Below, one piece after another: positions 420 through 60,066 of a stretch of 64,000 bases of DNA; the first letter of the stretch is position 1; each line of letters opens with the position of its first letter. The notes below the pieces were generated by a model. It saw only the letters and a program-made list of their open reading frames with translations. It searched no databases and was not told the origin of the DNA. The DNA comes from Podarcis melisellensis. Its lineage: Eukaryota. The stretch is taken from NCBI GenBank assembly GCA_964234715.1, contig OZ174283.1. One strand, 5' to 3'. The translations under genes were made by a program, and so were the position numbers.

Positions 420-2390
420 TGCTGTCAAGGAGTGTGGCAGCTGTGCCCTCTTGGTATATTCAAGAAGATCTCTCCAAGCTTTCTGGCTTAATCCTACCAG
501 ACAATAATCTAACACACCATGTAGTTTTTCCTGTATAGCTGTTCTCCAAGCATTATCCCACAATTTTCCAATGTCCCATTCCTCTAATATCTTCTATAGT
601 AGCACATGCTGCCACTAGTAAAACAAAGTAAATAGTTTTATTTCTGAATTTTTCTACCTTCAAATATCGGTAATAGTACCATTTGAGGTATAGCTTGAAC
701 AGGTACTCTAAGAATATTCCTTATTTCAACAACAACAAAAATTAAACCAGAACATCTGAGACCGAGGGCACTCTCACCACAAATGAAATTATGTTCCATT
801 GAAGTTTGAAGTTCCCAGACTTCAAACTTTACTATGAATCAGCAGCATTCTGCTGGTTGAAAACACAGCAGCTTCTTGAGAACACAGACATTTTGGACTT
901 AGAAGGTTATAATAATATTTTTGGGTGGCATGCATATTTGTGGTATGACAAGGTTAAAGCTCACAAAGCCTTCAAAAATCATATTGTCAGGAAAGCACTA
1001 TATAATGTCTGGATTAGATATAAAGACTTGCTGGAAAATAAAACCCCAAGGTGGTTGTCGCCAATGGAGGCAAAGGCTGTGAAAAGGCTCAATATGGAGT
1101 CCAAATGGCCGAAATATTGGGAAATTTTGGAACAAGAAGGGGACAAACTGAAATTGCAGAGTTTTGAGAAATTAAAAGATAAAGTGCGAGACTGGCTTCA
1201 TTATTATCAAATAATGGAGGTTTATAAGATGGACAGGAAAATTGGCTTCCAGGTGGAAAAATCAAAATTGGAAACAGAATTGTTAGAATCCAATACTAAA
1301 AATTTGTCAAAAATGTATAACTTGCTGTTGAAATGGAATACACAGGATGAAACGGTGAAATCAGCCATGATTAAGTGGGCCCAAGATATTGGTCATAACA
1401 TTATGTTCGCTGCCTGGGAAAAGTTGTGGACCACCAGGATGAAATTTACGGCATGTAATGCCTTAAGAGAGAATATTATGAAAATGATTTATAGGTGGTA
1501 CATGACCCCAGTCAAGCTTGCAAAAATTTATCACTTGCCTGACAACAAATGTTGGAAATGTAAAGAAAATGAAGGTACATTCTTTCACCTTTGGTGGACG
1601 TGCCCAAAGATTAAGGCGTTCTGGGAAATGATATATAATGAACTGAAAAAGGTATTTAAATATACCTTTCTGAAGAAACGAGAGGCCTTTCTCCTGGGCA
1701 TGGTCGGCCAATTGGTGCCAAAGAAGGATAGAACATTCTTTATGTATGCTACAACAGCAGCAAGAATACTCATCGCAAAGTATTGGAAGACACAAGATCT
1801 ACCCACCTTGGAAGAATGGCAGATGAAGGTAATAGATTATATGGGACTGGCAGAGATGACTGGCAGAATCCGAGACCAGGGGAGAGAGACAGCGGAAGAA
1901 GATTGGAAGAAATTCAAGGACTATCTTAAGAAATATTGTAAAATGAATGAATGTTAGAATGACGTTGGTTTAGAAACTATGTGGTTTCCAGCTGTAATGG
2001 ATAAGTAAAAAAGATAAGAGAGACTAAAAATTAAATGAAAAATAAGGGAAAGGATTTGCTGAATTAATAAATTAGAAATTGGAATACAGAAAGGGGAGGT
2101 ATGAGGAAGTCGGGGAAATAAGTTATAAGAAAATAAGGGACTGAAATTATACTTGTTTTTATTTTTGTTTGTTTGTTTGTATTATTGTATAGTTTAGTTT
2201 TGCTTTTATAAAATATTTGAAACTTTAATAAAAATCTTTAAAAAAGAAAAGAAAATATGTTCCTTTTTTTGGCCTTTTGTGAAGACACACATAATATTGG
2301 ATTTGATTGGAGCTCCTGCAAACCCTAGCACCTAACTTTGTAAAAAGTATTCACTCCAGAATGCTGTGAACTACCAAAATAAAGAAGAAC
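420..2390 (-). mobile_element. Old degenerate L1-clade LINE fragment (ORF2 C-terminus), split by the younger L1 at 798-2250
   Basis: Minus strand from 797 downward reads GT*FHLW*ECPRSQMFW, the L1 ORF2 zinc-knuckle motif (cf. GTFFHLWWTCPKIKAFW in the young copy), followed by YFVLLVAACA- and LEEW-like remnants; contains stops. Boundaries approximate. Confidence 0.6.
798..2250 (+). mobile_element. 5'-truncated young L1-clade LINE: ORF2 C-terminal 383 aa (806-1957), 3' UTR and A-rich tail
   Basis: Open frame with CWKC..EGTFFHLWWTCP zinc-knuckle motif; AATAAA followed by A-rich tail at ~2227-2250; 13-bp TSD gaaattatgttcc (785-797) / gaaaatatgttcc (2251-2263) with 1 mismatch. Confidence 0.9.
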
Positions 2391-11122: not shown

Positions 11123-12162
11123 ATCATTAAAACAGTCTCCTATGGGACTTAAAGTGACAGGTGCAGAGAAAGGGCATTATTTAAGTCATTCCTCTGCCAC
11201 GGTGCTAATTCCCTGATTCATGGGAACTTTCCAAGATTTGGGCAATGGATGTGACTATTTGTTGTGCATGACCCCCTTATTTCCCTTCTTTGCAGGGACA
11301 TCACTTTTCCAAGCTAAGGATGTGTGAGAAGCCTCACAAGAGGTGCACTGCTTCACTGTCACGAGTGGGATGGCGACACTGGCAGAACCAGCACTCACAC
11401 ACACCCACACCCCATTGCAGGTTTCCCATGCACTGCATCGCAACACCTGAAGAATGCTTTAACCTCCCGCCATTTCAGATTGAGAATCCATCCACCATTA
11501 AACTCAACATAGCATCCAGATTAATGTTTTAAACTCTTCTCTATCATTTTCCTTCTCTCCCCCTCTGCGCTTACCGTTACTACAGGCAAATTCATCTGAC
11601 AATCCTTCCTCCTCCATAAATAAGGAGTTGAGAGAATAAAGAGCTCATCTTGGAAGGTCTTGGCAGACACCGCCAACCGGGAAAGCCCTTGCTATGGGTA
11701 AGGTGGTGAGAGTGGGTATGCAACTCAGTGGCATTTCTGGAGCCTTTGCTGTTGCTTGAGGCTCAGCTGGCCTTGGTGGCCTGGAGCACCTTCCATCAGC
11801 TTTAGCTGCTGACTGAGCTGTGTCCCTATCTGGACAGAGATAGCCCAACTACTGTCTCCAATGCACTGGTAATCTCTTCAGATTAAGGGACGCGGGTGGC
11901 GCTGTGGTCTAAACCACTGAGCCTCTTGGGCTTGCTGATCAAAAGGTTGGTGGTTCGAATCCCCGCAACGGGGTGAGCTCCCGTTGCTCAGTCCCAGCTG
12001 CTGCCAACCTAGCAGTTCCAAAGCACGACAAAGTGCAAGTAGATAAATAGGTACTGCTCCGGCGGGAAGGTAAACGGCGTTTCCGTGCGCTGCTCTGGTT
12101 CGCCAGAAGCGGCTCAGTCCTGCTAGCCACATGACCTGGAAAGCTGTCTGTGGACAAACGCC

Positions 12163-13076
12163 CTGAAAAGGATAAACCAAGAACTCTGGCCACAAGTTTC
12201 AATGTAAGGATTAACTACTACTCAAGAGTTGAAAAGAAAAAAACGTATATATTCTGCAAAGAATGACAGTTTAGAGCTAATAGTAAATTTAAACGCAACG
12301 TGTGAGTACAATAGTTTTAAGATAATAAATTTAGATATAACGTTTAAGTGCCGAAATAATGTAGTTTCAAATGTGCAATAATATAGTATAAAGGTACATA
12401 AAATACCAGTACACAGCAATAGTTTTATACAAGTCTCAATGGTAGTCAAAAAGTGTCCATATTATATATACTCAGAATAAAGAATAAAGAGCCAAAAAGG
12501 AGTATCCGGAGTATGAATCAGATGTACGACTATACTCTAGAATGTATATACTTTATTATATTTATGATCTATGGAATTGAAGAACCTCGATTTATTTTGA
12601 CATATTATTTGATATTACCAGCTGAAGAAGGCGTTTACTCCGAAACAGGGCCCTGTCCTGGTCACCACTACTGAGTCGTACATCTGATTCATACTCCGGA
12701 TACTCCTTTTTGGCTCTTTATTCTTTATTCTGAGTATATATAATATGGACACTTTTTGACTACCATTGAGACTTGTATAAAACTATTGCTGTGTACTGGT
12801 ATTTTATGTACCTTTATACTATATTATTGCACATTTGAAACTACATTATTTCGGCACTTAAACGTTATATCTAAATTTATTATTATCTTAAAACTATTGT
12901 ACTCACACGTTGCGTTTAAATTTACTATTAGCTCTAAACTGTCATTCTTTGCAGAATATATACGTTTTTTTCTTTTCAACTCTTGAGTAGTAGTTAATCC
13001 TTACATTGAAACTTGTGGCCAGAGTTCTTGGTTTATCCTTTTCAGTGCATTTTCCACAAGAACTCCAATTTCTTTA
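12163..13076 (+). mobile_element. Non-autonomous Penelope-like element: inverted pseudo-LTR arms, hammerhead-containing spacer and 31-nt tail
   Basis: Arms 12163-12531 and 12674-13045 are reverse complements (one 3-nt indel seen); tail 13046-13076; 14-bp TSD tgtggacaaacgcc at 12149-12162 and 13077-13090; hammerhead in the spacer. Family assignment is by architecture. Confidence 0.75.
12617..12662 (+). ncRNA. Type I hammerhead ribozyme (minimal, palindromic stem III)
   Basis: ACCAG-CUGAAGA-AGGCGUUUACUCC-GAA-ACAGGG-CCCUGU-C-CUGGU: stem I ACCAG/CUGGU, core CUGAnGA and GAAA, stem II GG.G/C.CC, stem III ACAGGG/CCCUGU; predicted GUC cleavage after 12657. Confidence 0.8.
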
Positions 13077-13673
13077 TGTGGACAAACGCCGGCACCCTCT
13101 GCCTGTAAAGCGAGATGAGCGCCGCAACCCGAGTCCTCTGCGACTGGATTTAACCAACAGGGGTCCTTTACCTTTTAATCTCTTATATTACTGCAATGCA
13201 TTATATGTAAGGCTGCCTTTGAAGATGGTTCTGAAACTACAGCTGGTGCAGAATTCAGTGGCCAGCTGAATTTTGGTGTAGAGCAGGAAAGAGAGACTTT
13301 GAAACTCAACAGTGCACAGATGATGAACATGTTACTGCAGAATTCAGCAGCCAGGCTGCTCATCAGGGAAAGATGGTTTGAGCACATTACACTGATTCTG
13401 GTCTGACTGCACTGGCTGCCAGTTTCCAGTCCCAATTCAAAATACTGGTTTTGACCTATAAAGACTTAAATGGTTCAGGACCACAATACTTTTAAGGGTC
13501 ACCTCTATCCAAATGAACGGACCCAGGCCTTGAGATCCTCATTTGAGGTCCTTCTTCATTAGCCTACTCACTGAAGAACCAAGAGAGACTGTTTCACCAT
13601 AGGAAGACACATGAATTCCTAAGAGGTTACCAGGCATGTATTAGTATCACTTGATTTACTAATACATCGCTTT

Positions 13674-18800: not shown

Positions 18801-21800
18801 AACTGGGCCCTGCAGCACACCAGAAGCCATGGCAGGATCAGCAATAGTTTAGTTTAATATATTCCTGGGGACCCACCTCAAATGGGTAGCTAAATTTTAT
18901 GCTACTGAAGATTCCACCAATCTTAAAGGGCAGTCTCAATAGAGGATATTAGGCAATCTGAAAAGCAACAAGGCGGCAGAAAAGGCACCATCAAATGTTC
19001 TCCTGGTGCTCAGCAGCTTCGACACTTTCTGTTAGCTCCTACTTAGCTTCCCAAGAAGGAAAGTGTGACTCTCTACAGTCCCCCAGGGCCAAGGCTACAA
19101 CTCAGTAGCAGATCACATGCTTTAAATGTGACAACTGTATGCAAGTCTTGGCATCTCTGGTTAAAATGGAGGGCTGGAAAAGAGTCTCTCTGCCCTAAAT
19201 CCTTGAAGGGGACTGTGCTGCAAGTCACAGTAGACCAGAATCTCTCAATCTTGGGTCCCTAGATATTGTTGGACTAAAACTCCCATCATTCCTAGCCAGT
19301 CAAGGATGATGATTGTCACTCAAGAACATCTGGGGAGCCAAGGCTGAGAAACAATGCAGTAGACAATAACAAACTGGATGGACCAGTCCTCGGGACTCAA
19401 ATGTTCAGTGGGAAAGAAGTTACCAGAGAATCAAAGTCCCAAGGCACAGCGGAAAACTTACTTGAAGTGATCCTGCAAGGAAACATTGAAGTCAAACGCA
19501 TCTCCCCGGTCTCCAAAGCCAATGCCAATGAAAGCGCTTCGCCCTGACAAGGGAGGTGGAGAAACCAGTCAGCAGAAGGGATGAGGACAAAGGTTCAGAC
19601 CACTCATCCTTGCTACTAGACTGTCTTGGGAGAATGAGGGGGCACAGGCTGCCTTTTGCTATGTTGTCCTTTCAATGGGATCCCTTTTATCATGCCTCAA
19701 TTTACAGCCTTAATATATTATGCCAGAGAATTTCAACACAGACAAATTTGAGGGTTCTCCATGTAGCAAGGAATTGACATCTGTACAAATATAAGAGGGA
19801 CACCTAGCTTGCCAGTACTACATGTGAGAAGAATCTAGAGGGTCTTAGTAGACCACAAGCATAATGCATCAAAAGTGTGATGGAGCAGCAAAAAAAGCTA
19901 ATGCTATTCTAGGCTGCATCAACAGAAGTATAGTGTCCAGATCAAGGGAGGTCACAGTCCCACTCTTTTCTGCCTTGGTCAAACCACAACTGGAATACTG
20001 TGTCCAGTTTTGGGCTCCACAATTTAAGAAGGATATTGACAAGCTAAAACGTTTGCAGAGGAGGGTGACCAAGATGATTGGGGGTCTTATGAAGAACGGA
20101 TGAGGGAGCTGGGCATTGTAAGAGGAGATTGAGAGGCGATATGATACCCATCTTCAAATGTCTAAATATCTAAATGTCTGTCACATGGAAGATGCAGCAT
20201 GCTTGTTTTCTCCTGCTCTGGAGGGGAGGACCCGAACCAACGGCTTCAAGTTAAAAGAAAGGAGATTCTGACCAAACACCAGGAATAATTTTCTGATGTT
20301 AAGAGCTCTTTGACAGTGGAATGGACTCCCTCAGAAGGTTGCAGACTCTCCTTCTTTGGAGGTTTTAAAGCAGAATTTGGGTGATTGTCTGTTATGGATG
20401 CTTTAGCTGAGATTCCTGCATTGCAGGGGGTTGGACTAGATGACTCTTGGAGATCCCTTCCAACTCTACAATTCTATGATTGTAAGAATAGTCATTTTGG
20501 ATCATGCTTCCTAGGTGGCAACAGAACAGAAGGGAGCCTTAGGCCTAGGTTTGTTGGGCCCTATACAGTAGCTCAGGACTTGCCAACCTGGTGCCCTCCA
20601 GATACTATTGGAGCATAACTCCTAAAAGCTCCAGTCAATGGTCAGGGTGATGTAGAACTGTTGTAGGAGGGCATCAGATTGTTGTGCTCCTACTCCCAAG
20701 AACTACTTCATCATTCAGCCACACCACAGTTCAATTAAGGAGTAATAAACCCTTAATTCTCTCACCATTCCCATCCTGAATCCGGATGACAAAGTACCGA
20801 CTGGAATCAGTCACAGTCTCCACAGCAATGCCAGGATATTGATCTATTGGAGCCTGAGCAAAAAGCTCCCCTAAGGATACAGAAGAAGAGACCACTTTCA
20901 AGACCCAGACAGATTTATCACTACAAGCAAACTAGGGACACTATATTCTTTGGTCAAAGGAACAACCAACTTATTCAGCATCAAACACCATGAAGCAGTC
21001 TTTATCATTTTCATAAAAATCAAAGAGTACAACACAGTAAATTGCTGCATTGTCAGTCACACAGTATCTGAAGACTTCCAAACATTTTGAGTTTGCTTGC
21101 AATTCATAATCTATCCAACACCAGTGACACTAGCTTTTACTGCTAAACCTTAGCTCACAAATTAGATATTGCAAATAAATTTTAATTCTGCTCAGTGTGT
21201 GCATTTCAGTAAGCCCATTTACTAATAGTCTTCTAGTACCATGGGTTCACCATTTCCTTGGTTAATATACTATATTTTTCCATGTATAACACGCCCCCAT
21301 GTATAAGACGACCGCTATTTTTAGGAGCCTAAAATGAGGAAATAAAAAAATTAAGTTGTTGAGCTATTTTTGGCAAATTGCAAAAACAGTTGTTGAGCTG
21401 AACTATTGAGCTGTAAAAACAACCTCCAATTTATCACTAAACTTTTTCAGAAAAAAGGGTCTTATACATGGAAAAATACGGTACTTCACTCCCAAAATGA
21501 TTATGAAAATCAACACATGTAGCTTTTGCTTAAGTCAGAGCTTTAATGCTTGCAGTATCTCATTTTCAAGAAACAATTCCTGGCATGCCTGAACGGGTGC
21601 GGTACCTTGATGTTCATCAAAAATCTGCACACAATAAAAAACGTTACATATTTGAGAAAAATGCTACATTCTCTGCCACCTTGAATTACAACATGGATTC
21701 TAATGGCATCTTCCTCAACTCTGATTAAACATGAGTAACGAAGTGATAAAGGTAAAGGGACCCCTGACCATTAGGTCCAGTCGTGACCGACTCTGGGGTT

Positions 21801-24800
21801 GCGGCACTCATCTCGCTTTACTGGCCAAGGGAGGCGGTGTACAGCTTCCGGATCATGTGGCCAGCAGGACTAAGCCGCTTCTGGCGAACCAGAGCAGCGC
21901 ACTGAAATGGTGTTTACCTTCCCGCCAGAGCGGTACCTATTTATCTACTTGCACTTTGACGTGCTTTCAAACTGCTAGGTTGGCAGGAGCAGGGACAGAG
22001 CAACGGGAGCTCAATCCGTCGCGGGGATTCGAACCGCCGACCTTCTGATCGGCAGGCCCTGGGCTCAGTGGTTTAGACCACAGCGCCAATTGTGCATAAA
22101 AACTGTGTCGAGATATGGATGTTAATGACTGATCTTGCTTTTGGGTGACAGTCAAGTAAGTTTTCCTCAGAGCAGACCAACTGAAATTAATAAACCCAGC
22201 TTAGCCATGTGGATTCATGTTAATGGGTCCACTCTGAGTTAGACTGAGTTGACTATCACTTAGCCTGTAGCTGATCATCATCTCTGTTTGTTTCGCCTGA
22301 CATCTGTTTTGGTTACAATTGTAACATGCCCAAGTGTGCACACTGCAATCATAACTAGCACAGCTAAGGATACAAAAGCCCCATGGATCATCTAAACCAA
22401 CATACGACAGAGGGCTTAACACCACAGGTTGGGCGTGGAGAACCCTTGGCTCTCCAGGTGTTGCTGAACTACAATTCTCATCTGACCTGGCTACTGGCCA
22501 GGCTAAGGCTTGCCAAGGCGGATGGATCTTGTAGATCAGCGTTTTTGGAGGGGTCAAAGGTTCCCCAACACTGCCACAGAGGCTGGGGGAAAAAATACAA
22601 CAGAACAGAGTGATAAGCAGCAACAAAATTTTAGGGCAGAAAATTTTCATAAGACAAAGCTAACTCCTCCAAGGAGAAGGGAACATGTTTTGATGAAAAC
22701 ACACTATCAGTAATATCGCCTTCCCGTATGTAATTCTGTCTAACGTACGCATTATTGCAAAGCAATCACCCCCCCTTGAATAAACTTTAGCCAATGAATG
22801 CATTCCTATGTATACTTTACCCTGGTATATGCATTTTTGTACACATTACTTGACTAGAAACCTTCTCTGCAAAATTTGGAGAAGTGCAAGCAGCAACCAC
22901 AGAGCCGTTATGTATTGACAGACTTTTCCATAGATTTAGTATGTAGGCAAACCTCCCCACACTAATCATGTGGCAAGTTGACCGTCTGTATTCCCCACAA
23001 CATCTTTAAGAGCAGAACTAATCGGAAGCAACACCAAGTGAGGCACTACATAAAAAACCATGCAGGGCAATATCACCTATAGGAGTGAAGACAAAGGAAA
23101 ATGACGCTGAACTGGATATGTACATACTGACAGAAATTAAGCGGAGCAGTCTCATGACAGAGAAGTCCGAGAAGTATTTGAACCCACCCCAACCAGAGCA
23201 CAGAACCTGGGCAACCACGACTTCAGGACTACATAATGCCCACCCTGTGATTTCCTCACCTGAAACTTTGTCCTCTAGTTTTATATATGCAACTTTGCCT
23301 TTAGAGGTAATGCGGAGGCGTCCTGTCCAGTCCGGCTGGTCCAGTTTCCAGTCAGAAGCCCTGCAGGGTAAACAAACAGGGAGAAATTCGCTGAGAAGAA
23401 ACCCCCTCCAGCCACCCACGCCCTGTGGGCTTCCCCTGCTGATTTCACCACAATCCTGGGTCACGGCAGATTTAGCTTAACCTCCCTTGCGGCCAAGGGC
23501 ACAAGCAGCACTTTTATCTTTAGATGCTCCAGGACAGAATGCGGCCACAGAGTATCCCACCTTGTTCCTTCACCATCAATATTATCCACCCTGCTTCTCA
23601 GCCTGCTGCTGAACAGAATTCATAATTAGGATGAAAGCTATTATGATTGTTGTTATTGTTTTGAGGCTACTCTTATTTCAATAGGAACTAACTGCACCAT
23701 CACCAACACAACGTTTATACAGGAACTAAAAGCTACGTGTAGCACTTTTGGAAAAGGAGACTGACCTTGCCTGCTCAAAGTGGAATGTAGACAAAAACAA
23801 AGAAGGGGAAGCACCTTGTGGAAAGATGATACTATCATAAGGACATAGGAAGAGCCAGCAAAGCCAACAAGCGGGATTTGAGCACAAGAGGAGTCCTCTC
23901 CCCTGCAGTGGTTTCCAGCAACTGGGACTCAGAATCATTGCTGCCTCCAACTGTAGAGGCAGAGCAGAGCCATCCTGGCCAGGAGCCAGAGACAGCCCAC
24001 TCCTTCATCCTCTTTTAAAGCCACCCAAGCTAGTGGCAGTGACTGCCTTCTGTGGGAGCGAGTGCCATAGTTTAACTATGCGCTATGTGAAGAAGTATCA
24101 CAAGAAAGTGTTGCGAGTAACCTCAGATCCCCACTCAGCGGCTGACCTTGGGCCAGGCTAGCATCTCTCTGGCTAATCCAACTCACTGATATTTATCTGT
24201 GGGACCACCATGACTCACACGACCCCAACACCTGCTGAGATCAAAGGTGGCCATACAACACGTTCTATCTATAGAGAAAAGGTGGTGGAGGTCCCGTATG
24301 GGGTCCATCTGTATAGAGACATCAATTATGTGGAATTCCTGTAGGCTCACCCTTCTAGATCTGAGGTATTAAGAGCATATTGGCATGCTTTGATGTTTTA
24401 TTGGTATTTTGATCATGAGCTACTTGGGTTCGGCTGTACGTTTTAACAATGTAGTGGTGCCGCTGTGGTCTAAACCACTGGGCCTCTTGGGCTTGCCAAT
24501 CAGAGGGTTGGAGGTTTGAATCTGCTTTACAGTGGTGAGCTCCCAATTGCTCTATCCCAGCTTCTGCCAACCTAGCAGTTCGAAAGCATGCCAGTACAAG
24601 TAGATAAATAGGTACTGCTGCGGTAGGAAGATAAACGGCATTTCTGTGCACTCTGGCTTCTGTGACAGTGTCGCGTTGCGCCAGAAGTGGTTTAGTCATG
24701 CTGGCCACATGACCCAGAAAGCTGTCTGTGGACAAACACCAGATCCTTCGGCCTGAAGCGAGATGAGCACCACATGACATAGTCACCTTTGAATGGATTT

Positions 24801-27800
24801 AACCATCCAAGGGGTCCTTTACCTTTTACCTACCTACATTTTAACAGTATTTTTTTCCACACAATGAGGTCAATATGCCCCAGAGACAAATCTACAGAGA
24901 ATCCGAAGTTGTTGTTGTTGTTTAAACTACCCCACCCATCTGGCTGGGTTTCCCCAGCCACTCTGGGCAGCTCCCAACAGAATATTAAAAACATGATAAA
25001 ATATCAAATATTAAAAACTTCCCTAAGCATGTGAGACAGTGTGAAACAGTCTCTTCACAGATACAACTGTGGCCTTCCCAGAAAGAGTTCTCTGAATACA
25101 CACTTTCAAACCACTTCCAGGAGTCTGTGACATCTGAAAAGGAACTGAGCCACCCATCAGACTCATCTTAAACAGTCAGTCCTCAAAAGCATTGAAAAAA
25201 TGCTCAACTGCTGAGCTGACCTTTGAAAAGCTTTCAAATCTAACAAGGTTCTTCTGTAGGCAACAGCTTTCAAAAAAGAAATATCAGCTAGCATATTCTC
25301 CTGTGTGACCAGGCAGGATTCCCTATCATCTGGATGCTCAGGGTTTCCTGAGGAGGTTGTGAAATTGGCTCAGTAGGCAGATGCAGACTTCAAAACTTTT
25401 ACAAGCCATGGCCAGATTTGCTCCACTAAAAGTTTACTACATGTCCTTGGCCATGGCTTGTAAAAGTTTTGGAGCAAATCTGTATGGTGAAGAAATGCAA
25501 AAGTTTCCAAGGAATCTGAAACCATGGGTGGATTTTCCTCGTGCTTGGGGGGCAGAGGGGTGGAACTTTTTGGAAATAGCGCAAATGTGCAATTCTCACT
25601 TTCTTGAAAACTCAACTTTCTTTACTAATAATGAAAATGTATATAACCTGGAATTTAGAATTGAGTATTTGATATATCTATGAGATTTAAAATCAGTAAT
25701 ACATTTGTGTGTGTGTGTGTCCCAATTTTTATTTTTATTTTACAAATATATCAGTGTTAGAGATGGGATCCTAAAGGGTGTCTGAGTTTTAGACCACTAG
25801 AAAGGCAGGGACTGTGGGTAGGAGCAGGGATGATGTTTGAAAGTGATACCAACCAAAATGTAATCAACTAAACAATGTTTTATTTTGAAGTGTGATCCAG
25901 TCATTGAAATGTTTTCATTGCTTTTCATTTAGTGGATATTTAGTATTTGTATTTTAACTTATTGAACACTGCTTTGGTAGGTTTTGACTGTGAAGCTGTT
26001 TATAAAATAAGTACTGGGGCTCAGAAACAGAACACTGACCTCTCCAGTTTTGTGCAGAAAAAGAGTACTGTATATTGAAAGAAAAGGCCCAGGAAATAAA
26101 CGCACCTATAATGTAATTAAGAAGTAGCACAAGTTATTGTGAGCCAGCGTCATTGAAATAACTGGGAATTGCATGTAAGAGTAAGTGCAGAGTGGGTAAC
26201 AGAACAGACAGTTAGCTATCCTGGCCCCAAATGGCGCTGTGGGTAAAAGCCTCAGCACCTAGGACTTGCCAATCGCATGGTCGGCGGTTTGAATCCCTGC
26301 AGCGGGGTGCGCTCCCATCGCTCGGCCCCAGCACCTGCCAACCTAGCAGTTCGAAAGCACCCCAGGTGCAAGTAGATAAATAGGGACTGCTTTATAGCAG
26401 GAAGGTAAATGGCGTTCCGTGTGTTGTGTTGGCTCACCAGATGCAGCTTGTCACACTGGCCACGTGACCCGGAAGTGTCTGCGGACAGCGCTGGCTCCCG
26501 GCCTATAGAGTGAGATGAGCACACAACCCTAGAGGGGCAGGGGTACGGGCAGGGGTACCTTTACCTTTTTACTATATCAGTAAATGGCATATCCTTGAGA
26601 ATACTACTAACATGACTTACTTTTATTTTTCCCCCAGTTACCCTGGAGGATTCACAGTTCCTGATTCTGAACTTCTACTATGGGATTCATTCCAGAGGCA
26701 TTTCAGCCCTGAATTTGGGGAGATGCAGAGCCTAATGGAAGCCACGCTAATGGAAATCAATGACTCCTCTGATTGCTCTGTTCCTTGAACAAGTAACTGG
26801 GCTCCAAACCATTTTAAACTAACAGCGTGTGCCTACGCAGGGAGATGTCAGCAGAAAAACAAGTGTAATTTCTTAGCAGTTATCCACATTCCCTTCCTCT
26901 CTGCTCATCTAACCAGCGTGGTCAGCGCTGATGCACAATCTGGAAGATAATCCAGCTCCCTTTGTGACTGTTAGTGACGAGAGGAAAAGGGGAAGAGTGG
27001 ATTTGTCACTAATGAGAACCGGGATAGGATGACTCAGAGAACACACGTACTGCAAAAGAACAGAGAGGGGGGAAGAGGGAAGAGAAGGGAAGAGAGGATT
27101 ACAGAAGAAAATGATGTTCCAGAAGCCAACACCAGCAGAAATCCACCTGTGCAGCTAAACACTGAACAGTGGAGCAGCAAGTCTGAGGAAGCGACGCTCT
27201 CCATTTTAACACCCCTGTGGGAATGACACACACAGAGACCCAGCAGATGTCACACAACTCCCTTTTGCGCTCCTACAAGGGGGGGAAATGTAACAGAGGA
27301 AAGGTTGCCTGTCAGATGATGGCTGGTGAACAGAGGCTCCCAAATGAGGGGCAAACCAAGGAAAATCCATGCAGCAGAGCTTCTCCTGAAATGGGAAGAA
27401 TTCAACCCCAGGGGTTCAGCCGCAAAGATCTACGACAGGCCTTTCAATTTAAAAACATTAATAACAATGTGTTTGTCTGCTTTTAATGTTTACTGATTTT
27501 ACGGGTCTTTAAAAAATATAAATGCATTTATATAAATGCACACGATTTTAATGTCAGCCTCTCTGGTGTCATTAAAAGAATGAGTTAAGCCTCATTTAAA
27601 AGCAGGGCGTGTAAAGTGTGGGACGCGGGCAGAGGAACAAAAAAGGCCGCTCCATCTCCAAGGGAGGCGGAGGCGGAGTCCCAAGGACAGCAGGTGCCGG
27701 CGAGAAGAAATGGATCACGACCGCCTTACATAAGAGGCTCCCCCAGAAGTTGCATTGGGTCGCCATTTACTCCCTGAGTAAACGGACCAGGGCCACTTAG

Positions 27801-28307
27801 AGAAGTCTGCAGAGAAGGCTGTGCGGTTGCTGCTCCTGCTGTCATGGTTGCTATTAACGTAAAATGAGGAGGAAAATTAAAATGTGGTTTTTTAAAATAA
27901 AATAAAAAGCCTCCAATGAATTCCAACCTCAGCCACCCTGCAAGCTCTCGTCGTCCTCTCCTTATTCCACGGGGTAATAACTCTCTCTCTCTCTGTGTCT
28001 CTCATCTAGATATAGATAAATAGGCGGACACCTGCGCTGAATGAATGCCGGCCACAACCACCCCCCCCTGCGAGGGCGGGCGCCCGACCCTCAGCTCCGC
28101 GGGGAAAGAGGCGCGTGTGAACCCGTGCGCCCTCCGACGCGTGTGCCCCGCGGCCCGACCCGCCCCCCGCCCGGCCCGCCCGGCCCGCCTCTCCTGCCTG
28201 TATCCCCGGTTGGAGGCCCTCGGCGGGATCCTGTAGACGCTGATGTCGGGCTTCACGCACAGCACCGACTCGTACTCCACCTCGGGCGCCGCCGCCGCCG
28301 CCGCCAT
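15851..28307 (-). CDS. NECAP1: Adaptin ear-binding coat-associated protein 1 (282 aa, 8 coding exons)
   Basis: Exons 28198-28307, 23260-23360, 20766-20870, 19462-19543, 18084-18192, 17805-17991, 16529-16634 and 15851-15899 sum to 849 nt in frame; PHear domain ([28 protein letters not shown]..), [14 protein letters not shown] and C-terminal WVQF AP-2 binding motif. Confidence 0.97.
16097..16208. repeat. Short palindromic (MITE-like) repeat; related copy at ~22155-22260
   Basis: ggtggtattcaattgagttttactc ... gagtaaaacgtagttgaatgccatcc imperfect inverted repeat. Confidence 0.5.
16529..16634 (-). CDS. NECAP1: NECAP1 exon 7
   Basis: cccag|[35 protein letters not shown]|gtaacc. Confidence 0.93.
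17805..17991 (-). CDS. NECAP1: NECAP1 exon 6
   Basis: cacag|[45 protein letters not shown]|gtaact. Confidence 0.95.
18084..18192 (-). CDS. NECAP1: NECAP1 exon 5
   Basis: tgtag|[36 protein letters not shown]|gtgagg. Confidence 0.95.
19462..19543 (-). CDS. NECAP1: NECAP1 exon 4
   Basis: gtcag|[27 protein letters not shown]|gtaagt. Confidence 0.95.
19785..20480 (+). mobile_element. CR1 LINE 3' fragment
   Basis: [57 protein letters not shown]; CR1 3' end ccttccaactctacaattctatgatt. Confidence 0.9.
20766..20870 (-). CDS. NECAP1: NECAP1 exon 3
   Basis: cttag|[34 protein letters not shown]|gtgaga. Confidence 0.95.
21270..21481. mobile_element. Tc1/mariner (Tc2-like) MITE
   Basis: TIRs ctatatttttccatgtataa / ttatacatggaaaaatacgg; TA on both sides. 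Confidence 0.75.
21748..22088 (-). mobile_element. Sauria SINE
   Basis: Reverse complement of the 11887 element; aaaggtaaagg tail at the left end. Confidence 0.92.
23260..23360 (-). CDS. NECAP1: NECAP1 exon 2
   Basis: tgcag|(R)[33 protein letters not shown]|gtgagg. Confidence 0.95.
23870..24100 (-). mobile_element. Old CR1 3'-end relic
   Basis: Reverse complement resembles the CR1 3' fragment at ~41320-41630 (tacttcttcac..catagttaaactatgg..ggctttaaaagagg). Confidence 0.5.
24456..24834 (+). mobile_element. Sauria SINE
   Basis: Full-length diverged copy with diagnostic body and cctttaccttttacc tail. Confidence 0.9.
26232..26571 (+). mobile_element. Sauria SINE (different subfamily)
   Basis: tggcgctgtgggtaaaagcc head, gccaacctagcagttcgaaagc body, acctttacctttt tail. 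Confidence 0.9.
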
Positions 28308-28930
28308 CCTCGCCACTCTGGGACGCGCAGCGGGAGGGAGGGCGGCCGGCAGCCCCGCGCGCCTCCAGCGCCGCCTTTGATTGGGGCAGCGGCGCGGGCG
28401 AGGGGACGCGGCCTATCACGTTCGCCGAAGCCCGGGCGGGCGCCATCTTAACCCCTGGCGCACTCTTACGCAACCAGGCCGGCCATATTGCGCAGTCACG
28501 ACCCGCCGAGGGCGCCATCTTGGATTTCTGCGCGGGGGGGGGGGGGGAGGTTCGGCCGCCTCGCGGCGTAGACTTATCAAGGGGTAGAGTCGCCTAAGAC
28601 TAAGTCGCCAACTCCCGGGTTCTTTAAAGATCTTTCCCCCCCTCGGGGAGATGTGCCAGAATTGCACCCATTCGACAGACCCCCCCCTTCCAGCTCGGCT
28701 CGCGCTCAGCGCCACGTCGTCCGCTGCTTTCTAGCTGCCACTCGGGACGCAGCCCTTGATGGAAAGCGGAGCGCGGCCTCCCCAGCTCGGGCTGCCGCAA
28801 CGGATCCCTTTCCGCCTTTCAGGAGCCGCCAGACGCGCCGCTGTTTCCTCGCCCGGGCGCGCCAGCTGAGGGGCGTCTCAGGCGGGCTGCTCTGCAGGCG
28901 GCATTTCCCCAGCTCCTCGGAATGGCACCG
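28040..28930. promoter_or_regulatory. CpG island / NECAP1 promoter
   Basis: Very GC- and CpG-rich; two YY1-type CGCCATCTT motifs (28441-28449, 28513-28521), CCAAT (gattgg ~28379) and GC boxes. Confidence 0.85.
28198..28307 (-). CDS. NECAP1: NECAP1 exon 1 (coding part)
   Basis: ATG at 28307; [36 protein letters not shown](R)|gcagga, GC donor. Confidence 0.92.
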
Positions 28931-32315: not shown

Positions 32316-33164
32316 AGGGCACAAATGGCTTCTGCGATTCAAAGAAGTGTTTTGTTTCATTTTCAGATGGCACCTGCATCCTTATAAGTTACACACACTG
32401 CATCTTATGTATATTGCTTTGTGAGGGCTTGGCCTTAAAGGGCACCTTATAAATACTTCCAATGATTAAATAAATAACTTCATCTCGTTTAAAAATGGGC
32501 TTTTGAAGTGCATTTATTCCAAGCAAGTTCTGATGTTCTGCCATTTAAGCTATATGGCTGAAGGGCACACTTTCTACAGATTGATCTCTGCTGTTTTGCC
32601 TTAAAAACAAAACTAAAATGCTCTTAAAAGTTTGCTCAGCCTTATGTGGGGACTCTCCTAATCAGAACAATCAAGAAAATGAACTAGCATCTTCTCCCTG
32701 TAAAAATGATTAGAAGTGCAACTAAGTGCAACTAATCTGCAACTTCCTGTCCAGAGCTGCCTTTTCTTCTTCCCCTATTCTTGACCCAGTCGGACAGAAG
32801 GAGCTGGTGACCAAAGACTGCAGCAGCAACAGAAACTACTGTGGAGCCAGTCCTACAGCAAAGGTAGGCATTAGCTGGGGCAGGAGATTGGGGTTGAGGG
32901 CTCCTATATGAGACATATAAGCTTATAGCCAGGATTTGGAGAGGGAAAATAGAAAGTATTGAGTGGGGTGGATGGGGAGAAAAGCAACTCATCATTTTTA
33001 TGAATTATTCATAGTTGGGGAGCTCTGTCCAAAATAAGAGAGATCTTATCTAGGAGTTTGCTCACTTTTTTGAAAAATCTGAAGAAGGGAGAGCTGCTAA
33101 GGAAAGCAAAAAGCCACCAAATGCCCCCCCTCTTCTAATAAAAACCAATAAGGATCGAGTTTCT

Positions 33165-33370
33165 AAAGGGGTAGCTGTGCTTGCTGTTTTTGCTCCAGCA
33201 AAAGAGCCACTTTAAAGACTAACAAAAGTATGCTGGTATAAGCATTCATGGACTACAGTTCACTTCATCAAATGCATGGTATGGTTATCTGTGGAATCCG
33301 ACTATAGTCCATGAAAGTTGATGCCCGGACAAATGTGTCAGCCTTTAAGGTGCCACAAGACTCTTTGTTT
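33165..33370. mobile_element. Decayed Penelope-like inverted pseudo-LTR remnant with degenerate hammerhead motifs
   Basis: gccactttaaagactaac..cattcatggactacagt inverted relative to gactatagtccatgaaag..gtcagcctttaaggtgccacaagactc; minus strand gives gcatTTGATGAagtgaactgtagtccatGAATgctta. Confidence 0.6.
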
Positions 33371-35710
33371 TTAATAAAAATCAGTAACTTACAATGCACA
33401 GGCTTATATTGTGTGATACATACTCTGGAAACTAAAACTGCTATATCAGGGACTACAAATCATGGCCACTCTTGTCAACTCACTTTTTAATCATTAAAAC
33501 AGTGTGCCTTGATACTATTATAGTGTAGTTGCAATATTTTGTCTGATACTGTCTGCCTACTAAAAATGTAATAAAATAAGGATGTGGATGCACAGCCCTA
33601 ATAACCACACAATATTTGACTATGGATATGTTCCCTGCTTCAACGATTGCAGTTTTAATAGGTCCATAGTGCTAAAAAAAAGTAGTCCCCAGACCTGTAA
33701 GACAAGGAAACTCTTAAATTTCTGAAGAAATCCAGGTTCTAAGCCCTCACGGTTGTGAATAAATATAACAAATGGTTACAAGAGTGCTACTATCAAAACT
33801 CATAAGCAACCAAATGGTCTGTACATATTTTTTATATATATATTCCATCATGTTTGGGCTTTCAATATTACTGACCACAATTGCCACTGCTGCATGGCTG
33901 ACACATTGGTTATACTGTAATTGCAACATCGCACACGTCATAAAAATATACAAGAGACAAAAATGCTGTCCACTCCCAAATTTTCCCCTACCACAAAGGG
34001 AACCACATCATTTGCAATGAGAAAAAAAGGAACTAAGCTCAAGTCATTATAGAAAAGGATTTATACACTGAACCACCACCACCAAGCCCTTCAAGGTACA
34101 GCTAGGATTATCGTAGCAAGCAGGTGGAACTGACCATTAGAAGTACACCCTGGGGGCAAGGGGAAGCCCCCATCTCACTGGAGCTTAATGTAATTTCCTG
34201 AGACTGCCGCTGCATGAATGGGGAGCGCATCCAATTCCTTTGCACTGGGCTTCTTTAAAGTTCTGACTAATGCAGACATGGTTACTGATCCCTCATCCCT
34301 GATCCTTCCTCATCCTGGTGATGTGCATCCATGTAAGCAAGCGGAACAGGACAGTGCAGAACTAGACAGACCAGGGAGGTCCTTGATCCTGTAGAGATAA
34401 GTTTGTTCCAAGAGTATAGAAAAAGCCAGGCCCACATGGAGATGGGAAGGTGGCTGCCTCGATTTCTAGACATCATTAAAGAGCGGCAACAGGCAAGATA
34501 GTGTTATTTAATTAATGTGTGTGCACACCTGCAGAGGCAGTGGAGCCACTTGGATTTTATGGCACAGGGCAAAGATGTCTTTTGCTGCACCCAGGAAGCA
34601 GGGAAGAGCCCTGGTGTTCTTTAATCCTGTACAAGGAATAAGGGGTAAAGCGAGGAAGGCTGAGATTGCTTAGCACAAAAAATCTCCAGGGGGGGCCACT
34701 AGTTTTGTCACCATTTTGTGGGAGGGATTAAATCACATACCAGAAATTTAGGTTTGCACAATTGCAACTGGGGTGCCATTAATTCACTTCTTTGAAAAAA
34801 GAAACCCGGACATTTCCCAGTCAGGAAAGTGACAGGCACTAAAAATTTGGGATAACCATTGATTCATGGAAGTTGTACAACATCCCCATAAAGAAATTAG
34901 AACAGAATTCCACCCACCACCCAACTACCAGAGAACAGGAAGACAACCATTCCCACTTCTTAGGGTATAATTAAATGAATTATACAAGAGGACACCAACC
35001 TGTTGGTCAAGGGCCTTCCACAAGTTTTGGGTTCCTGCCCCTTGTGGTCCCACCCTCTCATCCTCCAGGTGTTAACATCATCTGAGTTTGCACACTTTTT
35101 CTTGATCTTCCATCAAGTGCAGCAATACAAAAAGAGGCTTATTTTGACCTTACCTGACAAATGAATCTCACTGCATACAAGCAACAAACCAAGCGTTAAA
35201 GCTTTCCCTGGACTGAGCTATTTTAGGCTGCAGGTGAAGGGTTGAATATTTGAGTTCTCTCCCATCTTAAATAAATTCACCTTCCTGCATGAAGGAAATG
35301 CTTCCACCTGTAGCCTGAAGCAGTTTAGCCCCCCAAAATATCTTGCTACTGTACTTGACTCTGCTGAACGTATGAACTATCCCTAGCAGGGTTAACCCCA
35401 GATACGTTGCTGCTTGAAGTGGAACATCTAAGCACCACTCCTTCCCACTAATAAACAAACAGGAGGCGTAAGTCACTAGGAAGTTCTTCTGCACAAGTGT
35501 GAATAAAATAAATGGGAGCGATGCAAGAGCCCAAGGGTGCCCCTGCAAAGCTCCCATGCATTGCAGCAGCAGCTTGTGCTGGATAATTTCCCACTGACTG
35601 TGGCCTCATCTCTGAGGCTGCAAACTCTCCTCATTTAGAACAGCATCTAAGAACTTTGGCTTGTTTGCATTTTTCAGGCTTTTCCTCCTTTCTTTTCTTT
35701 TTTAAAGAAC

Positions 35711-37117
35711 ATGCCTCCATTCATGGCTAATGAGAGTTTCTACGAATCTGAGGACTCCTTCACGTTACAACATATGGATTCCGTGTCTATTGGATCTCTG
35801 CTCATCTTCTCCATCACCTTTCTCCTGGGCCTCCCCGGAAATGGCTTGGTAATCTGGGTCCTTGCTCTGAAAATGAAGCGAACGGTGAACACGGTTTGGT
35901 TTCTGCACCTTGCCGTGGCTGACTTTGTGTGCTGCCTGTCCCTGCCTTTCTCCATTGTCCACCTGGTGCTGCATCAGCAGTGGCCTTTCGGGTGGTTTTT
36001 CTGCAAGATTATCCCGTCTGCCATCATCTTCAACATGTTTGCCAGTGTCTTCCTCCTCACCACCATCAGCATCGACAGGTGTCTTGTGGTGATGAAGCCT
36101 GTCTGGTGTCAGAATCACCGGACAGTAAGGTTCGCATCCGTGGTCTGTGGTGTTACCTGGTTCCTAGCTTTCATTATGTGTTTTCCTGCTTTCTTCTATC
36201 GCGAAATCTCCATTGATGAATCGGGCAATGCCAGGTGTGTCTACAATTGGCACAGTGAGGAATATGAGGAAGGATGGCCAGATTATTTGTTTCCCAGCAA
36301 CGAAGAGTTTTCTAGTCAGCGTCCTACCTTTGTGGCTAGTAGCTATGAAGATATTTTCACAGACGGAATTTTGGATGTGTATTCTGAGTACCATATTCTT
36401 AATACAGACAAAAGCAAGGCTTGGTATTCCAGCACACCAAGCACTCTTGGCACTAATAGAGATACAGATTCATTGACGGTGGAAGTCACCAGCCCAAAAT
36501 ACGTGTCACACGAATCTTCCCACCCAGCTACTGCCATATCCAATGTTATTTATTCCGATCTTCCCGACTATTTTCTTTTGGGCAATTACTCTGGCAACCT
36601 CCCGATTAGCAATGACTCAATGGCAATGCCCTTTTATGATGAGCTGCCAAGCGTTCTTGTGTCCATTACTGTCACCCGAAGCATCTTTGGTTTTCTCCTC
36701 CCCTTCGGAATCATGGCTGCCTGCTACGTCCTTATTGCCCTCAAGATGCTCAGAAACCAATTTGCAAAGTCCCGTGTGAAGGCTTTGCGGGTGATCCTGC
36801 TTGTGATAGTCACTTTCTTTCTCTGTTGGGCTCCTTATCATGTCATTGGGGTGCTGTATCTCCTGGCTAACCCCAGCACAGCACTTTATGAAACACTGGC
36901 TTTGTGGAACCATGTTTCCACAGCATTGGCCTATGCCAACAGCTGCATCAACCCACTTCTTTATGTGTTTGTGGGGAAAAAATTCAGGGAGAAAGCACGC
37001 CAGACGGTGCAAGGGATTTTGGAAGGGGCGTTCAGTGAGGAAGGAATATGCTCCACTGCCTTCTCCCAGGAAAGAAGCAAGTCTACAGTTGACCATATTG
37101 ATGTTTCCGCCCTCTAA
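35711..37117 (+). CDS. C3AR1: Complement C3a anaphylatoxin receptor (468-aa class A GPCR, single coding exon)
   Basis: 7 TM segments, LGLPGNGLV, DRC motif, PVWCQNHR, NPLLY; very large (~150 aa) second extracellular loop diagnostic of C3aR; acceptor ttttaaag| 3 nt before the ATG; lies between NECAP1 and FOXJ2. Confidence 0.96.
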   Translation: MPPFMANESFYESEDSFTLQHMDSVSIGSLLIFSITFLLGLPGNGLVIWVLALKMKRTVNTVWFLHLAVADFVCCLSLPFSIVHLVLHQQWPFGWFFCKIIPSAIIFNMFASVFLLTTISIDRCLVVMKPVWCQNHRTVRFASVVCGVTWFLAFIMCFPAFFYREISIDESGNARCVYNWHSEEYEEGWPDYLFPSNEEFSSQRPTFVASSYEDIFTDGILDVYSEYHILNTDKSKAWYSSTPSTLGTNRDTDSLTVEVTSPKYVSHESSHPATAISNVIYSDLPDYFLLGNYSGNLPISNDSMAMPFYDELPSVLVSITVTRSIFGFLLPFGIMAACYVLIALKMLRNQFAKSRVKALRVILLVIVTFFLCWAPYHVIGVLYLLANPSTALYETLALWNHVSTALAYANSCINPLLYVFVGKKFREKARQTVQGILEGAFSEEGICSTAFSQERSKSTVDHIDVSAL

Positions 37118-47800: not shown

Positions 47801-50800
47801 GTAATGGCAGTTGCCAACATTGCAGCATGTGTTTGCTACCATCTTTGCATTGCTCAGATATACTCTGAGCACTGAACATTCAGAATTTTTGGCGATGGTA
47901 CAGGCACCTCAAACACCTCAAACTACACTCTTCTGTTCCCCCCCCCCCTGCATACTAAGGGATCAGGCAAAACAGATCAAGGTTAGGGAAAATCTGAGAG
48001 ACGGAGACCGGATGTGACAAAAACATATGCTTTGTTGAACCTTTTATCCCCATCCCTAGAAACGATGCCACGTGAGGGGGTGTGGCTACACCTCTTTGAT
48101 TCCGCCTCACCTACTGTCCTGGCATGGCAGGTCCCCACCCAGAAAGCCCTGCTGAGTACCTTGGTTCATGGGCTGCTCTTGTTTGCCACTATTCATGGCA
48201 CAGGACTCGGAGATTCGGGGAAGCTGCTGTGGGCCTCCCAGATGAGGGAGCTGACCGGTCTGGGTGAGAAAGTGATTGAGGGAGTCACAGAGGTTGGCAA
48301 TGTGATGCTGATCTAGGGTCCAGTTCTTACGCTCAGCCTGGCGCAGACTCTCCATCAACTCTGCAGGGGCCAGAGAAAGAGAGAGGTAAGAAACTAGGCG
48401 TCACTGTTCTCTACTCTTGCCAAAGAGATCCTTCTCTATATCTCTACTTCCCACTCTAAGCCTTTGAAGGGCCCCTTTCCCCCTCTACCAGAGTGAAGGG
48501 TGTAAGGAAATAACATAACATGACCCACCTGAGAACTGGGAGTGCTCAATGCTAGACCAGTTCAGCCGATTCACCATCTTGAAACTTTCTTTTAGGGAAT
48601 CTATGTTGGAGCACCACTCAGGGGGAAATGCTGAAAAATGGGGGACACAAAATAGTCAACAGGGTGTACCCCCATACCTTATATTAGACACCAAATACAT
48701 GCCTAATACATTTATCTCTAAAATCCTGAACTGAACAACCTACCTCCTCATGACAACGTAACTCTTCTCTGTACCCAGCCACTCCACTCCCTGTTTTATT
48801 CATTAATTCATTCAAAGCTTTCCAAGCTCCTTTTATCATCAATAATGGCTTACAAAAATTGAAGCTAATAAAATAATAGATATAAACACAAACACCCAGC
48901 AGCTAAAAGCAAAATTTAAAGCCATCTAGTCTAGGGAACCACCCACTAACAGTGCCTCAGTCTTATCTGGATTGAGTTTCAGTTTGTTGCCTCCCATCCT
49001 GTCCATTATCAAGGCAAGACACTGGTCCAGCACTTCCACTGCCTCACGTTCAAATGTAAAGGAGAAATAGAGCCCAGTGTCATCAGCATACTGCTGACAA
49101 GGTACTCCAAACCTGTGGATAACCCCACCCAGTGCTTTCATGTAGATGTTAAACAACATGGGGGATAGGAGTGAGCCATGCAGGACCCCACATTGAAGGT
49201 TCCACATGGCTGAAAAACATTCCCCAAGCAACACCCTCTGGGAATGACCATACAAGTAGGACTGGAACCACCGCAAAGCGGTGCCACCCACACCTAGTTC
49301 AGACAGTTGCTCCAGGATACCATGGTTGATGGTATCAAAAGCCATTGAGAGGTCGAGAAGAATTGACAGGGACACGTTTCCAAAGCCGTTTCTGTGCCTA
49401 AACCCCAACTGAAATGGATCTGGAAAATCAGTTTCTTCCAAAAGTGCCTGGGTATGGTCTGCGACCACTAGCTACAGAACCTTGCTCAGGAAAAGGAGAT
49501 TAGCAACTGCTGTAGTGAGTTAGGTTTTCCAAATCCAGGGAATTTTTCTTCTGGGCTGCCCTCCCCCCGCCACCCCAAACTTCTGAGGGAGTGGAACTAG
49601 CAAGAAGGCCCCACTGCTTATCTTAACACCTGAGAGGATCTGAAGGGAAGAAGATAGTTTCAGAAATTTGGGGCTCATGTTGTTAAGGGCTTTAAACGCT
49701 AACGTAAGCACCCTGAATTGAACCCAGAAACTATCTGGCAACCAATGCAGCTGTTTTAAAACAGGGATTATATTGGAGTTCTAAATGGAACCCCAGCTGC
49801 ATTTGGATCAATTGAAGTTTTCGAGTTGTATTCAAGGGCAGCCCTATGGAGAGTGAATTGCAACAATCCAGTCCATAAGTTACTGTGTACTGTGACCATA
49901 TCATCTCTGTCCAAAAGGGCCTCAGCTAGATATAGGCACTCCTAGTCAAAACCACCTGAGCCTACAGTGATAGTGTTGGACCTTGGAGTAAACCCAAGGC
50001 CCAGTGCAGGGTACAATCAAGAGAGCCGCAGTCAGTTCTGACTTCCTGCACAATGCAGGCCTGCACAAGTGTGTTTTTCCACATTCACACTTGACTATCT
50101 TTGGTGCACAGCTAAAAATGTAAACTGTGATGTGGCCCTTCATGATTTGCTCAGAAGGAACGTGCCAAAAGCTCCTCAACTCCAAAATTTCAGCCTTGCC
50201 TAGTCCATCTGTCCTTCATTCAATGAATATTTCTGTCAGTTTGCCCACTCTGTAACTCACCAAAGCTAGCATTATTCATGGAAGCTTGTGATTGCTGCTG
50301 CTGCTGTTGCTGTTGTTGTTGTTGCTGCTGCTGCTGCTGCTGTGAATGGGAGTGCGGGTGGTGGTGCTGATGCTGGTGATATCCTCCATGCTGCATTGAA
50401 GAGGGGTGAATGGACATCACAGGTGGGGGGCCATAGCTGTCACCTCCTTGCTGCTTGCCACCCTGGGATGGACAGCCTTCTGAGGTTGGAGTGTGGAGGG
50501 GGGGTGCAGCTCCCACCGAGGAGGGCACCTGCTGCTGGTGGTACATATAGTAATTGTGGTTGGAGGGCTGCATGTCACCCAGGAGGGAAGAGAAATCTGA
50601 AGGGAGGATTAAGAGGAAAGTATTAAAATGGGTGGCGGGCCCTTTTTAGCCTGGAGGGCCACATTCACCTGTGCCCAGCCCTCCAGGGGCCACTATGGCC
50701 ACTCACTCTCTTATCAGGTACATGCACTTATGCATACACACACAAGACACACACAAGCATATTATGGCCCTCCTTCTGATGACTGGCAGAGGGGGCAGTG

Positions 50801-59526: not shown

Positions 59527-60066
59527 GTAATAGTGCCACTGTATTCTGCTCTGGTCAGACCTCACCTGGAGTACTGTGTCCAGTTCAGGGCACCACAGTT
59601 CAAGAAGGACACTGACAAACTGGAACGTGTCCAGAGGAGGGCAACCAAAATGGTCAAAGGCCTGGAAACGATGCCCTATGAGGAACGGCTAAGAGAGCTG
59701 GGCATGTTTAGCCTGGAGATGAGGAGGTTAAGGGGTGATATGATAGCCATGTTCAAATATATAAAAGGATGTCACATAGAGGAGGGAGAAAGGTTGTTTT
59801 CTGCTGCTCCAGAGAAGCGGACATGGAGCAATGGATCCAAACTACAAGAAAGAAGATTCCACCTAAACATTAAGAAGAACTTCCTGACAGTAAGAGCTGT
59901 TCGATAGTGGAATTTGCTGCCAAGGAGTGTGGTGGAGTCTCCTTCTTTGGAGGTCTTTAAGCAGAGGCTTGACAACCATATGTCAGGAGTGCTCTGATGG
60001 TGTTTCCTGCTTGGCAGGGGGTTGGACTCGATGGCCCTTGTGGTCTCTTCCAACTCTATGATTCTA
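59527..60066 (+). mobile_element. Young CR1 LINE 3' fragment
   Basis: [40 protein letters not shown].. nearly intact; caactctatgattcta end. Confidence 0.92.

Follow-up and report, generated by a model that had tools for sequence, protein, structure and literature searches.

We found that a 64,000-nucleotide stretch of DNA from the lizard Podarcis melisellensis (NCBI GenBank assembly GCA_964234715.1, contig OZ174283.1; this whole stretch is called the window below) contains a 914-bp insertion that is real and recent. The insertion lies in an old short interspersed nuclear element (SINE). It is probably the product of a single retrotransposition event of a Penelope-like element (PLE) that left two head-to-head, 5'-truncated copies of the 3' region of the element. 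The structure of the insertion, the site that it entered, its youth and the ribozyme motif inside it can all be read directly from the DNA.

The features by which PLE insertions are recognized are present: an inverted copy head-to-head with a direct copy, a tail at one end only, a target site duplication (TSD) with an empty site that can be rebuilt, and a hammerhead ribozyme motif of the PLE type. Published PLE insertions are strongly 5'-truncated, have an adjacent inverted and 5'-truncated copy at the 5' end, and have a tail of 30-40 bp at one end only (PMC8557442). The pseudo-long terminal repeats (pLTRs) of PLEs carry hammerheads (PMC8557442), and PLEs from rotifers have a 31-bp tail, an inverted pLTR and TSDs of 8-10 bp (PMC3846280). 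The head-to-head, tailed PLE insertion is already in the literature; the insertion described here represents no new type, and in that respect it contributes little. Its value is that it is a very clean and datable example, with a proven empty site and exact junctions.

Structure, target site and age of the insertion

The two arms of the insertion are essentially the same sequence in opposite orientations (Table 1). A global alignment of the arms gave 369 matches, no mismatches and a single 3-nt gap (369 nt compared to 372 nt). The gap falls in a AATAATAAA run, near position 12322 in the left arm and 12880 in the right arm. The 3' end of the inverted copy faces outward, to the left, and this copy has neither the tail nor the hammerhead. 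The direct copy, including the tail, is 545 nt (12532-13076). The two TSD copies are identical at 14 of 14 positions and, as found with a repeat finder, flank the whole 914 bp. The insert is AT-rich (~26-30% G+C), compared to ~55% G+C in the flanking DNA, and its 3' end is neither poly(A) nor a simple repeat. No second copy of the arm, the spacer or the tail was found in the window by self-BLAST.

Two small features of the right end concern its boundaries. The tail opens with TGCAT (13046-13050), immediately after what we take below as the proximal start site, and the TG at the distal end (13077-13078) can be assigned either to the element or to the TSD. A possible stem-loop has the boundary between arm and tail (13045/13046) in its loop. 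This is a weak feature; its fold (z = -1.1) is no better than that of shuffled sequence.

Table 1. Features of the insertion, its host SINE and related SINE copies, by position in the window
Feature	Positions	Strand	Evidence or remark
Host SINE, 5' part, interrupted	11897-12148	+	Rebuilt empty site aligns with three SINE copies
Left TSD copy, 14 bp, tgtggacaaacgcc	12149-12162		Same as 13077-13090; present once in paralogous SINEs
Inverted 5'-truncated copy of the 3' region of the element, 369 nt	12163-12531	-	Reverse complement of 12674-13045
"Spacer", unique 142-nt 5' extension of the direct copy	12532-12673	+	Continuous with the right arm
PLE-type minimal type I hammerhead motif	12617-12662	+	Only descriptor match in the window
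Direct copy, part in common with the inverted copy, 372 nt, 26% G+C, non-coding	12674-13045	+	
Possible stem-loop, 9-bp stem (13022-13030 with 13057-13065)	13022-13065	+	Minimum-free-energy fold
Tail, 31 nt, direct copy only	13046-13076	+	Absent at the left end; not host SINE
Right TSD copy, 14 bp	13077-13090		Same as the left copy
Host SINE, 3' part	13091-13175	+	Rebuilt empty-site alignment
Paralogous SINE copy	21748-22088	-	Uninterrupted at the site
Paralogous SINE copy	24456-24828	+	Uninterrupted at the site
Paralogous SINE copy	26232-26532	+	Uninterrupted at the site

We rebuilt the empty site by joining the left flank, one copy of the 14-mer and the right flank. Three further SINE copies in the window aligned to the rebuilt site with no break at the junction, at 76-83% identity. 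One of these copies (the second in Table 1) contains the 14-mer once, with a single substitution and in the same context (...gaaagctgtctgtggacaaacacc...). Because the paralogous SINEs run through the rebuilt site, the tail belongs to the insert and not to the host. The interrupted host is a tRNA-derived SINE, which we take to be of a common squamate type.

The insertion is young. There were no substitutions in the 369 arm positions and the 14 TSD positions, which places divergence below ~0.8% with 95% confidence (an upper bound of three events in 383 sites). If neutral substitutions are assumed to accumulate at 1-2.5 x 10^-9 per site per year, the insertion is less than roughly 2-4 million years old, provided that gene conversion has not kept the arms alike. 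The one indel between the arms is in a slippage-prone run and could date from reverse transcription, because the two arms are independent copies.

An initial annotation of this DNA, made from its sequence, had described inverted arms of ~370 bp that differ by one 3-nt indel, a 142-bp spacer with a hammerhead, a 31-nt tail on the right side only, a 14-bp TSD and a very recent origin. All of this description held up: the arms differ by a slippage indel and no substitutions, the spacer is unique sequence with the motif inside it, the tail has no counterpart on the left, and the TSD agrees with the rebuilt empty site. The annotation also stated that the insertion has no credible coding capacity. 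We agree. There are many stop codons in all six frames of the element, and its longest open reading frames (ORFs; 50-87 amino acids) had no significant match in Pfam, the best having E = 0.14, far under the cut-off of its model.

A hammerhead motif of the PLE type and a proposed mechanism

We searched both strands of the window with a strict descriptor of type I hammerheads. The descriptor called for CUGANGA, a helix II closed by a G-C pair, GAAA, a perfectly palindromic helix III, UH, and a helix I of at least 4 bp. There was a single match, in the spacer, and no match in 200 shuffles. In this motif, helix I is formed by 12617-12621 with 12658-12662 (ACCAG with CUGGU). The core CUGAAGA (12622-12628) is followed by one extra A (12629). 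Helix II contains the pairs G12630-C12641 and G12631-C12640, then a C-U mismatch and possibly the pair G12633-C12638. GAAA is at 12642-12645, and helix III (12645-12656) is ACAG-GGCC-CUGU, a perfect 12-nt palindrome. Cleavage is predicted to occur after GUC, at C12657.

Hammerheads from PLEs have three hallmarks: positions 9 and 10.1 are separated by a base, G10.1 pairs with C11.1, and 15.2-16.2 together with loop 3 is palindromic (PMC4209133). All three are present here. The hammerhead fold was not preferred in a monomer of the RNA. In a cofold of two copies there was a 12-bp intermolecular helix III, with a free energy of -35.7 kcal/mol compared to 2 x -10.5 kcal/mol. Such behaviour would be expected if the ribozyme acts in dimeric form.

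Work on a PLE from another reptile offers a mechanism that would account for the arrangement of the two copies. The purified Poseidon protein from Anolis carolinensis (PAc) cleaves and extends both target strands (PMC11167929). Reverse transcription by PAc begins at two adjacent internal sites on the RNA, and the tail seen in the genome is the stretch between them (PMC11167929). Based on these results and the junctions described above, we infer that both target strands served as primers at the locus in P. melisellensis, with the events in the following order. The endonuclease of the element would have cut the two target strands 14 bp apart. Reverse transcription from the end of the bottom strand would then have begun at the distal internal start site and given the direct copy, which was extended far enough to include the hammerhead. 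From the end of the top strand, it would have begun 31 nt upstream, at the proximal start site, and given the inverted copy with no tail. The two copies would have been joined at 12531/12532, and fill-in of the staggered cuts would have produced the 14-bp duplication.

This series of events would explain several features together. The tail would be the stretch between the two start sites of reverse transcription; its length fits the model with two start sites that came from the in vitro work with the Anolis PLE. The spacer would not be a separate module, and would simply be the extra 142 nt that were reached by the longer direct copy. The hammerhead would be confined to the spacer because the inverted copy stopped short of the motif.

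The insertion has much in common with those of the endonuclease-bearing PLEs (the Penelope/Poseidon and Neptune clades). Both have a head-to-head truncated copy, a tail at one end only (31 nt here), a TSD and no poly(A), and in both the hammerhead is a minimal type I motif in which helix III is a palindrome and helix II is preceded by an extra base. The differences are that the copy described here has no ORF and no tandem pLTR, and that its target is a G+C-rich SINE. Another comparison is with the element that encodes PAc, Poseidon_Ac (PMC11167929). The likenesses include a reptile host, the architecture of the hammerhead, a tail that fits two adjacent start sites, and the use of both target strands as primers, which would explain the inverted pair.

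Some observations weigh against a PLE origin or against the mechanism proposed for it. Rfam hammerhead models had no match, either in the whole window at the gathering score or in the element at E values up to 10; the sole Rfam matches were spurious, to a microRNA model (MIR169_2) on the long hairpin. The minimal motifs of PLEs were found only with a relaxed descriptor that Cervera and de la Peña made for them (PMC4209133). Helix II of the motif is weak, two G-C pairs being followed by the C-U mismatch. The self-BLAST that found no second copy in the window also leaves no link there to a parent that encodes a reverse transcriptase and a GIY-YIG endonuclease. The target is a G+C-rich SINE, compared to the AT-rich or microsatellite DNA published as PLE targets (PMC8557442, PMC11167929). 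Finally, priming from two strands has been demonstrated only in vitro and for one other family (PMC11167929).

The copy itself has no ORF, has one hammerhead of a type that is thought to act as a dimer, and is most likely dead on arrival. Little or no self-cleavage would be expected from this motif, because there is a single copy at the locus and helix II is weak.

We also made exact scans of metagenome contigs (with two patterns) and of viral contigs (with one pattern). Nothing was found; lizard DNA is not expected in these collections, and the result is uninformative on copy number.

The parent element and other possible origins

The layout of the insertion differs from that of Poseidon_Ac. 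In PAc, the hammerhead cut site is position +26 of the ORF, and the start of reverse transcription is at +111 to +118 (PMC11167929). The hammerhead of Poseidon_Ac overlaps the start of the ORF and is ~85-92 nt from the start site of reverse transcription. In contrast, the predicted cut site in the P. melisellensis insertion is 388 nt from the proximal start site and 419 nt from the distal start site, and the whole stretch is non-coding. We saw no sequence resemblance to the Poseidon_Ac consensus in a comparison that was made only by eye. These differences in layout and sequence suggest that the parent belongs to a PLE lineage other than Poseidon_Ac, one with a longer non-coding 3' region, or, less probably, is a non-coding derivative.

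The absence of an ORF is expected even with an autonomous parent and is not proof of a non-autonomous family. It is uninformative on autonomy because heavy 5' truncation, here to fragments of 545 nt and (inverted) 369 nt, is typical of PLE insertions. It is nevertheless conceivable, if unlikely, that the mode of insertion was as we propose and that the source was a dedicated non-autonomous family: a short non-coding RNA with a PLE 3' end and a hammerhead that an autonomous PLE mobilized in trans. The direct copy is non-coding and AT-rich over its full 545 nt, and in Poseidon_Ac an equal distance from the 3' end would already reach coding sequence. Non-autonomous PLE derivatives and mobilization in trans through pLTRs are documented (PMC8557442, PMC3846280). 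However, 5' truncation by itself accounts for the missing ORF, the length of the pLTR differs among PLE families, and no second copy is present in the window that could show a common 5' end.

The initial annotation had proposed a non-autonomous PLE or retrozyme-type family that was probably mobile recently. The assignment to PLEs agrees with the published descriptions of an inverted partial copy, a one-sided extension (31 nt here), a TSD and a PLE-style hammerhead. The retrozyme assignment does not stand. Retrozymes consist of head-to-tail tandem units with a hammerhead in each (PMC7229834; bioRxiv 10.64898/2026.07.22.740005). The insertion resembles the non-LTR retrozymes of animals in being non-coding and in having a type I hammerhead, and these retrozymes are related to the pLTRs of PLEs. 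It differs from them in that the layout is inverted and not tandem: the window contains one hammerhead and no direct repeat of the unit. Of the annotation as a whole, then, the structure, the PLE type, the youth and the distinctness from an older PLE remnant in the window (see below) were upheld, the retrozyme part was lost, and the non-autonomous status went further than the missing ORF allows.

The inverted pair could also have formed with no priming from the second strand, if a single DNA copy of the same kind of element snapped back and primed its own extension. There is a proposal that inverted PLE structures whose junctions are palindromic arise by self-priming (PMC3846280). At this locus, a reading of the sequence showed neither complementarity between the terminus of the DNA copy (12532-12537) and the site beside 12674 nor any microhomology there. 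The loop would be 142 nt. Snap-back would also leave unexplained that the inverted arm ends precisely where the tail begins, whereas two start sites account for it (PMC11167929). We consider snap-back to be a rather improbable origin.

A DNA transposon with long terminal inverted repeats, of the fold-back type or the miniature inverted-repeat transposable element (MITE) type, would agree with the near-perfect arms of ~370 bp and the flanking duplication. However, the ends of the insertion are asymmetric (only one has the 31-nt tail), the hammerhead is of the PLE type and there is no transposase. In addition, the TSDs of DNA transposon superfamilies are short and of fixed length, unlike the 14-bp duplication. 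A symmetric element with terminal inverted repeats at both ends and a short, fixed TSD is not what we found, and the asymmetry and the long TSD had already been read as unlike MITEs with TA or 8-bp duplications in the initial annotation. We regard a DNA transposon as very improbable.

It is equally hard to believe that the inverted left arm is an artefact of assembly, for example from a palindromic chimeric read; tandem and inverted PLE structures do trouble assemblies (PMC8557442), but the left arm precisely fills the interval from the left TSD to the 5' end of the direct copy, and its own end coincides with the tail boundary, landmarks that an artefact would ignore.

We also compared the insertion to the inversions that are made by twin priming of long interspersed nuclear elements (LINEs). 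As in the inversions of L1, there is an inverted 5' segment, which implies priming off both target strands. Twin priming of L1 draws the inverted part and the direct part from separate, non-overlapping stretches of one RNA, and the 3' end is poly(A). In contrast, both parts of the P. melisellensis insertion are copies of one 3' stretch, with full overlap, and poly(A) is absent. The insertion is not a LINE twin-priming product.

The tail of the PLE insertion has some complementarity to its target. In the register of the junction, the 13 nt at the start of the tail (UGCAUUUUCCACA) can pair with the top-strand primer (the 14-bp TSD) at 11 positions with one bulge. In a test anchored at the junction, 95 of 49,234 random genomic 14-mers scored as well; this test was chosen after seeing the data. 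Aligned locally and without an anchor, the tail and the target context gave no significant score, with 13.5% of random genomic windows as good. Some guidance by the target is plausible because the target is G+C-rich, unlike the usual AT-rich sites of PLEs. It is possible that annealing of the cut DNA over the tail could set the proximal start site. Alternatively, the endonuclease could perhaps favour targets that resemble the tail. A preference for tail-like targets is reported for Drosophila Penelope, according to PMC11167929. One locus cannot choose between annealing and target preference.

Annealing, if it were general among insertions, would account for the missing tail of the copy primed from the top strand. 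Initiation in vitro is reported to need no homology to the cleaved DNA (PMC11167929), and annealing, if true, would qualify that finding. The fuller proposal is that the parent is an uncatalogued and possibly non-autonomous squamate PLE lineage whose 3' region is long (at least 0.5 kb), AT-rich and non-coding, and in which annealing between target and tail helps to choose the proximal start site. Taken as a whole, we hold this to be speculative and quite unlikely. Copies of this kind could be used genome-wide to map the start sites of reverse transcription for each PLE family in vivo, and they could also show whether complementarity between target and tail matters.

The surrounding DNA

The insertion is close to NECAP1. 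The exons of NECAP1 are on the minus strand, from ~28.27 kb to a stop codon near 15.85 kb, and the insertion is ~2.8 kb downstream of that stop codon, either in the 3' untranslated region (UTR) or past the gene. If this stretch is in the 3' UTR, then the NECAP1 transcript would hold a long segment of double-stranded RNA (a perfect hairpin of ~370 bp). The longest stop-free stretch that includes a NECAP1 exon is 152 amino acids; the whole protein is ~285 amino acids by a rough count of exons. A very G+C-rich region with long spurious ORFs on both strands (28000-28520) lies around exon 1 of NECAP1 and is probably a promoter CpG island.

Two other genes are recognizable in the window. A single-exon ORF of 468 amino acids (35711-37117, plus strand) encodes a G-protein-coupled receptor similar to C3AR1, and a forkhead exon (57090-57680, minus strand) is similar to FOXJ2. 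The order NECAP1-C3AR1-FOXJ2 is the same as in the human neighbourhood. Exact-protein look-ups of the C3AR1-like ORF and of a 76-amino-acid ORF in the arm of the insertion found no record of either.

The window also contains an old head-to-head PLE remnant (33130-33430). As the initial annotation had it, this remnant, at 33.2 kb, is distinct in sequence from the young insertion (by self-BLAST), and it is from a different family. Its inverted arms have ~70% matching over the first ~95 columns and a mean column identity of 73% over the whole alignment. Each arm contains a decayed, hammerhead-like core (TTGATGAAGTGAACTGTAGTCCATGAATGC on the minus strand and CTGTGGAATCCGACTATAGTCCATGAAAGT on the plus strand), in each case with ...TTTAAGGTGCCACAAGACTC after it. 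The remnant reflects the same mode of insertion at a much greater age, and it shows that this mode recurs here.

Other fragments of retroelements are present, which by eye we take to be the C-terminal part of an L1-like ORF2 (806-1957, plus strand), a piece of a LINE reverse transcriptase (48926-49468, minus strand) and a CR1-like C-terminal piece (59533-59907, plus strand). None of these non-LTR fragments is from a PLE, so the window supplies no PLE protein as a query. Lastly, an imperfect inverted repeat at 62201-62492, with 43-nt arms of 77% complementarity and 206 nt between them, may be a small relic of a DNA transposon.

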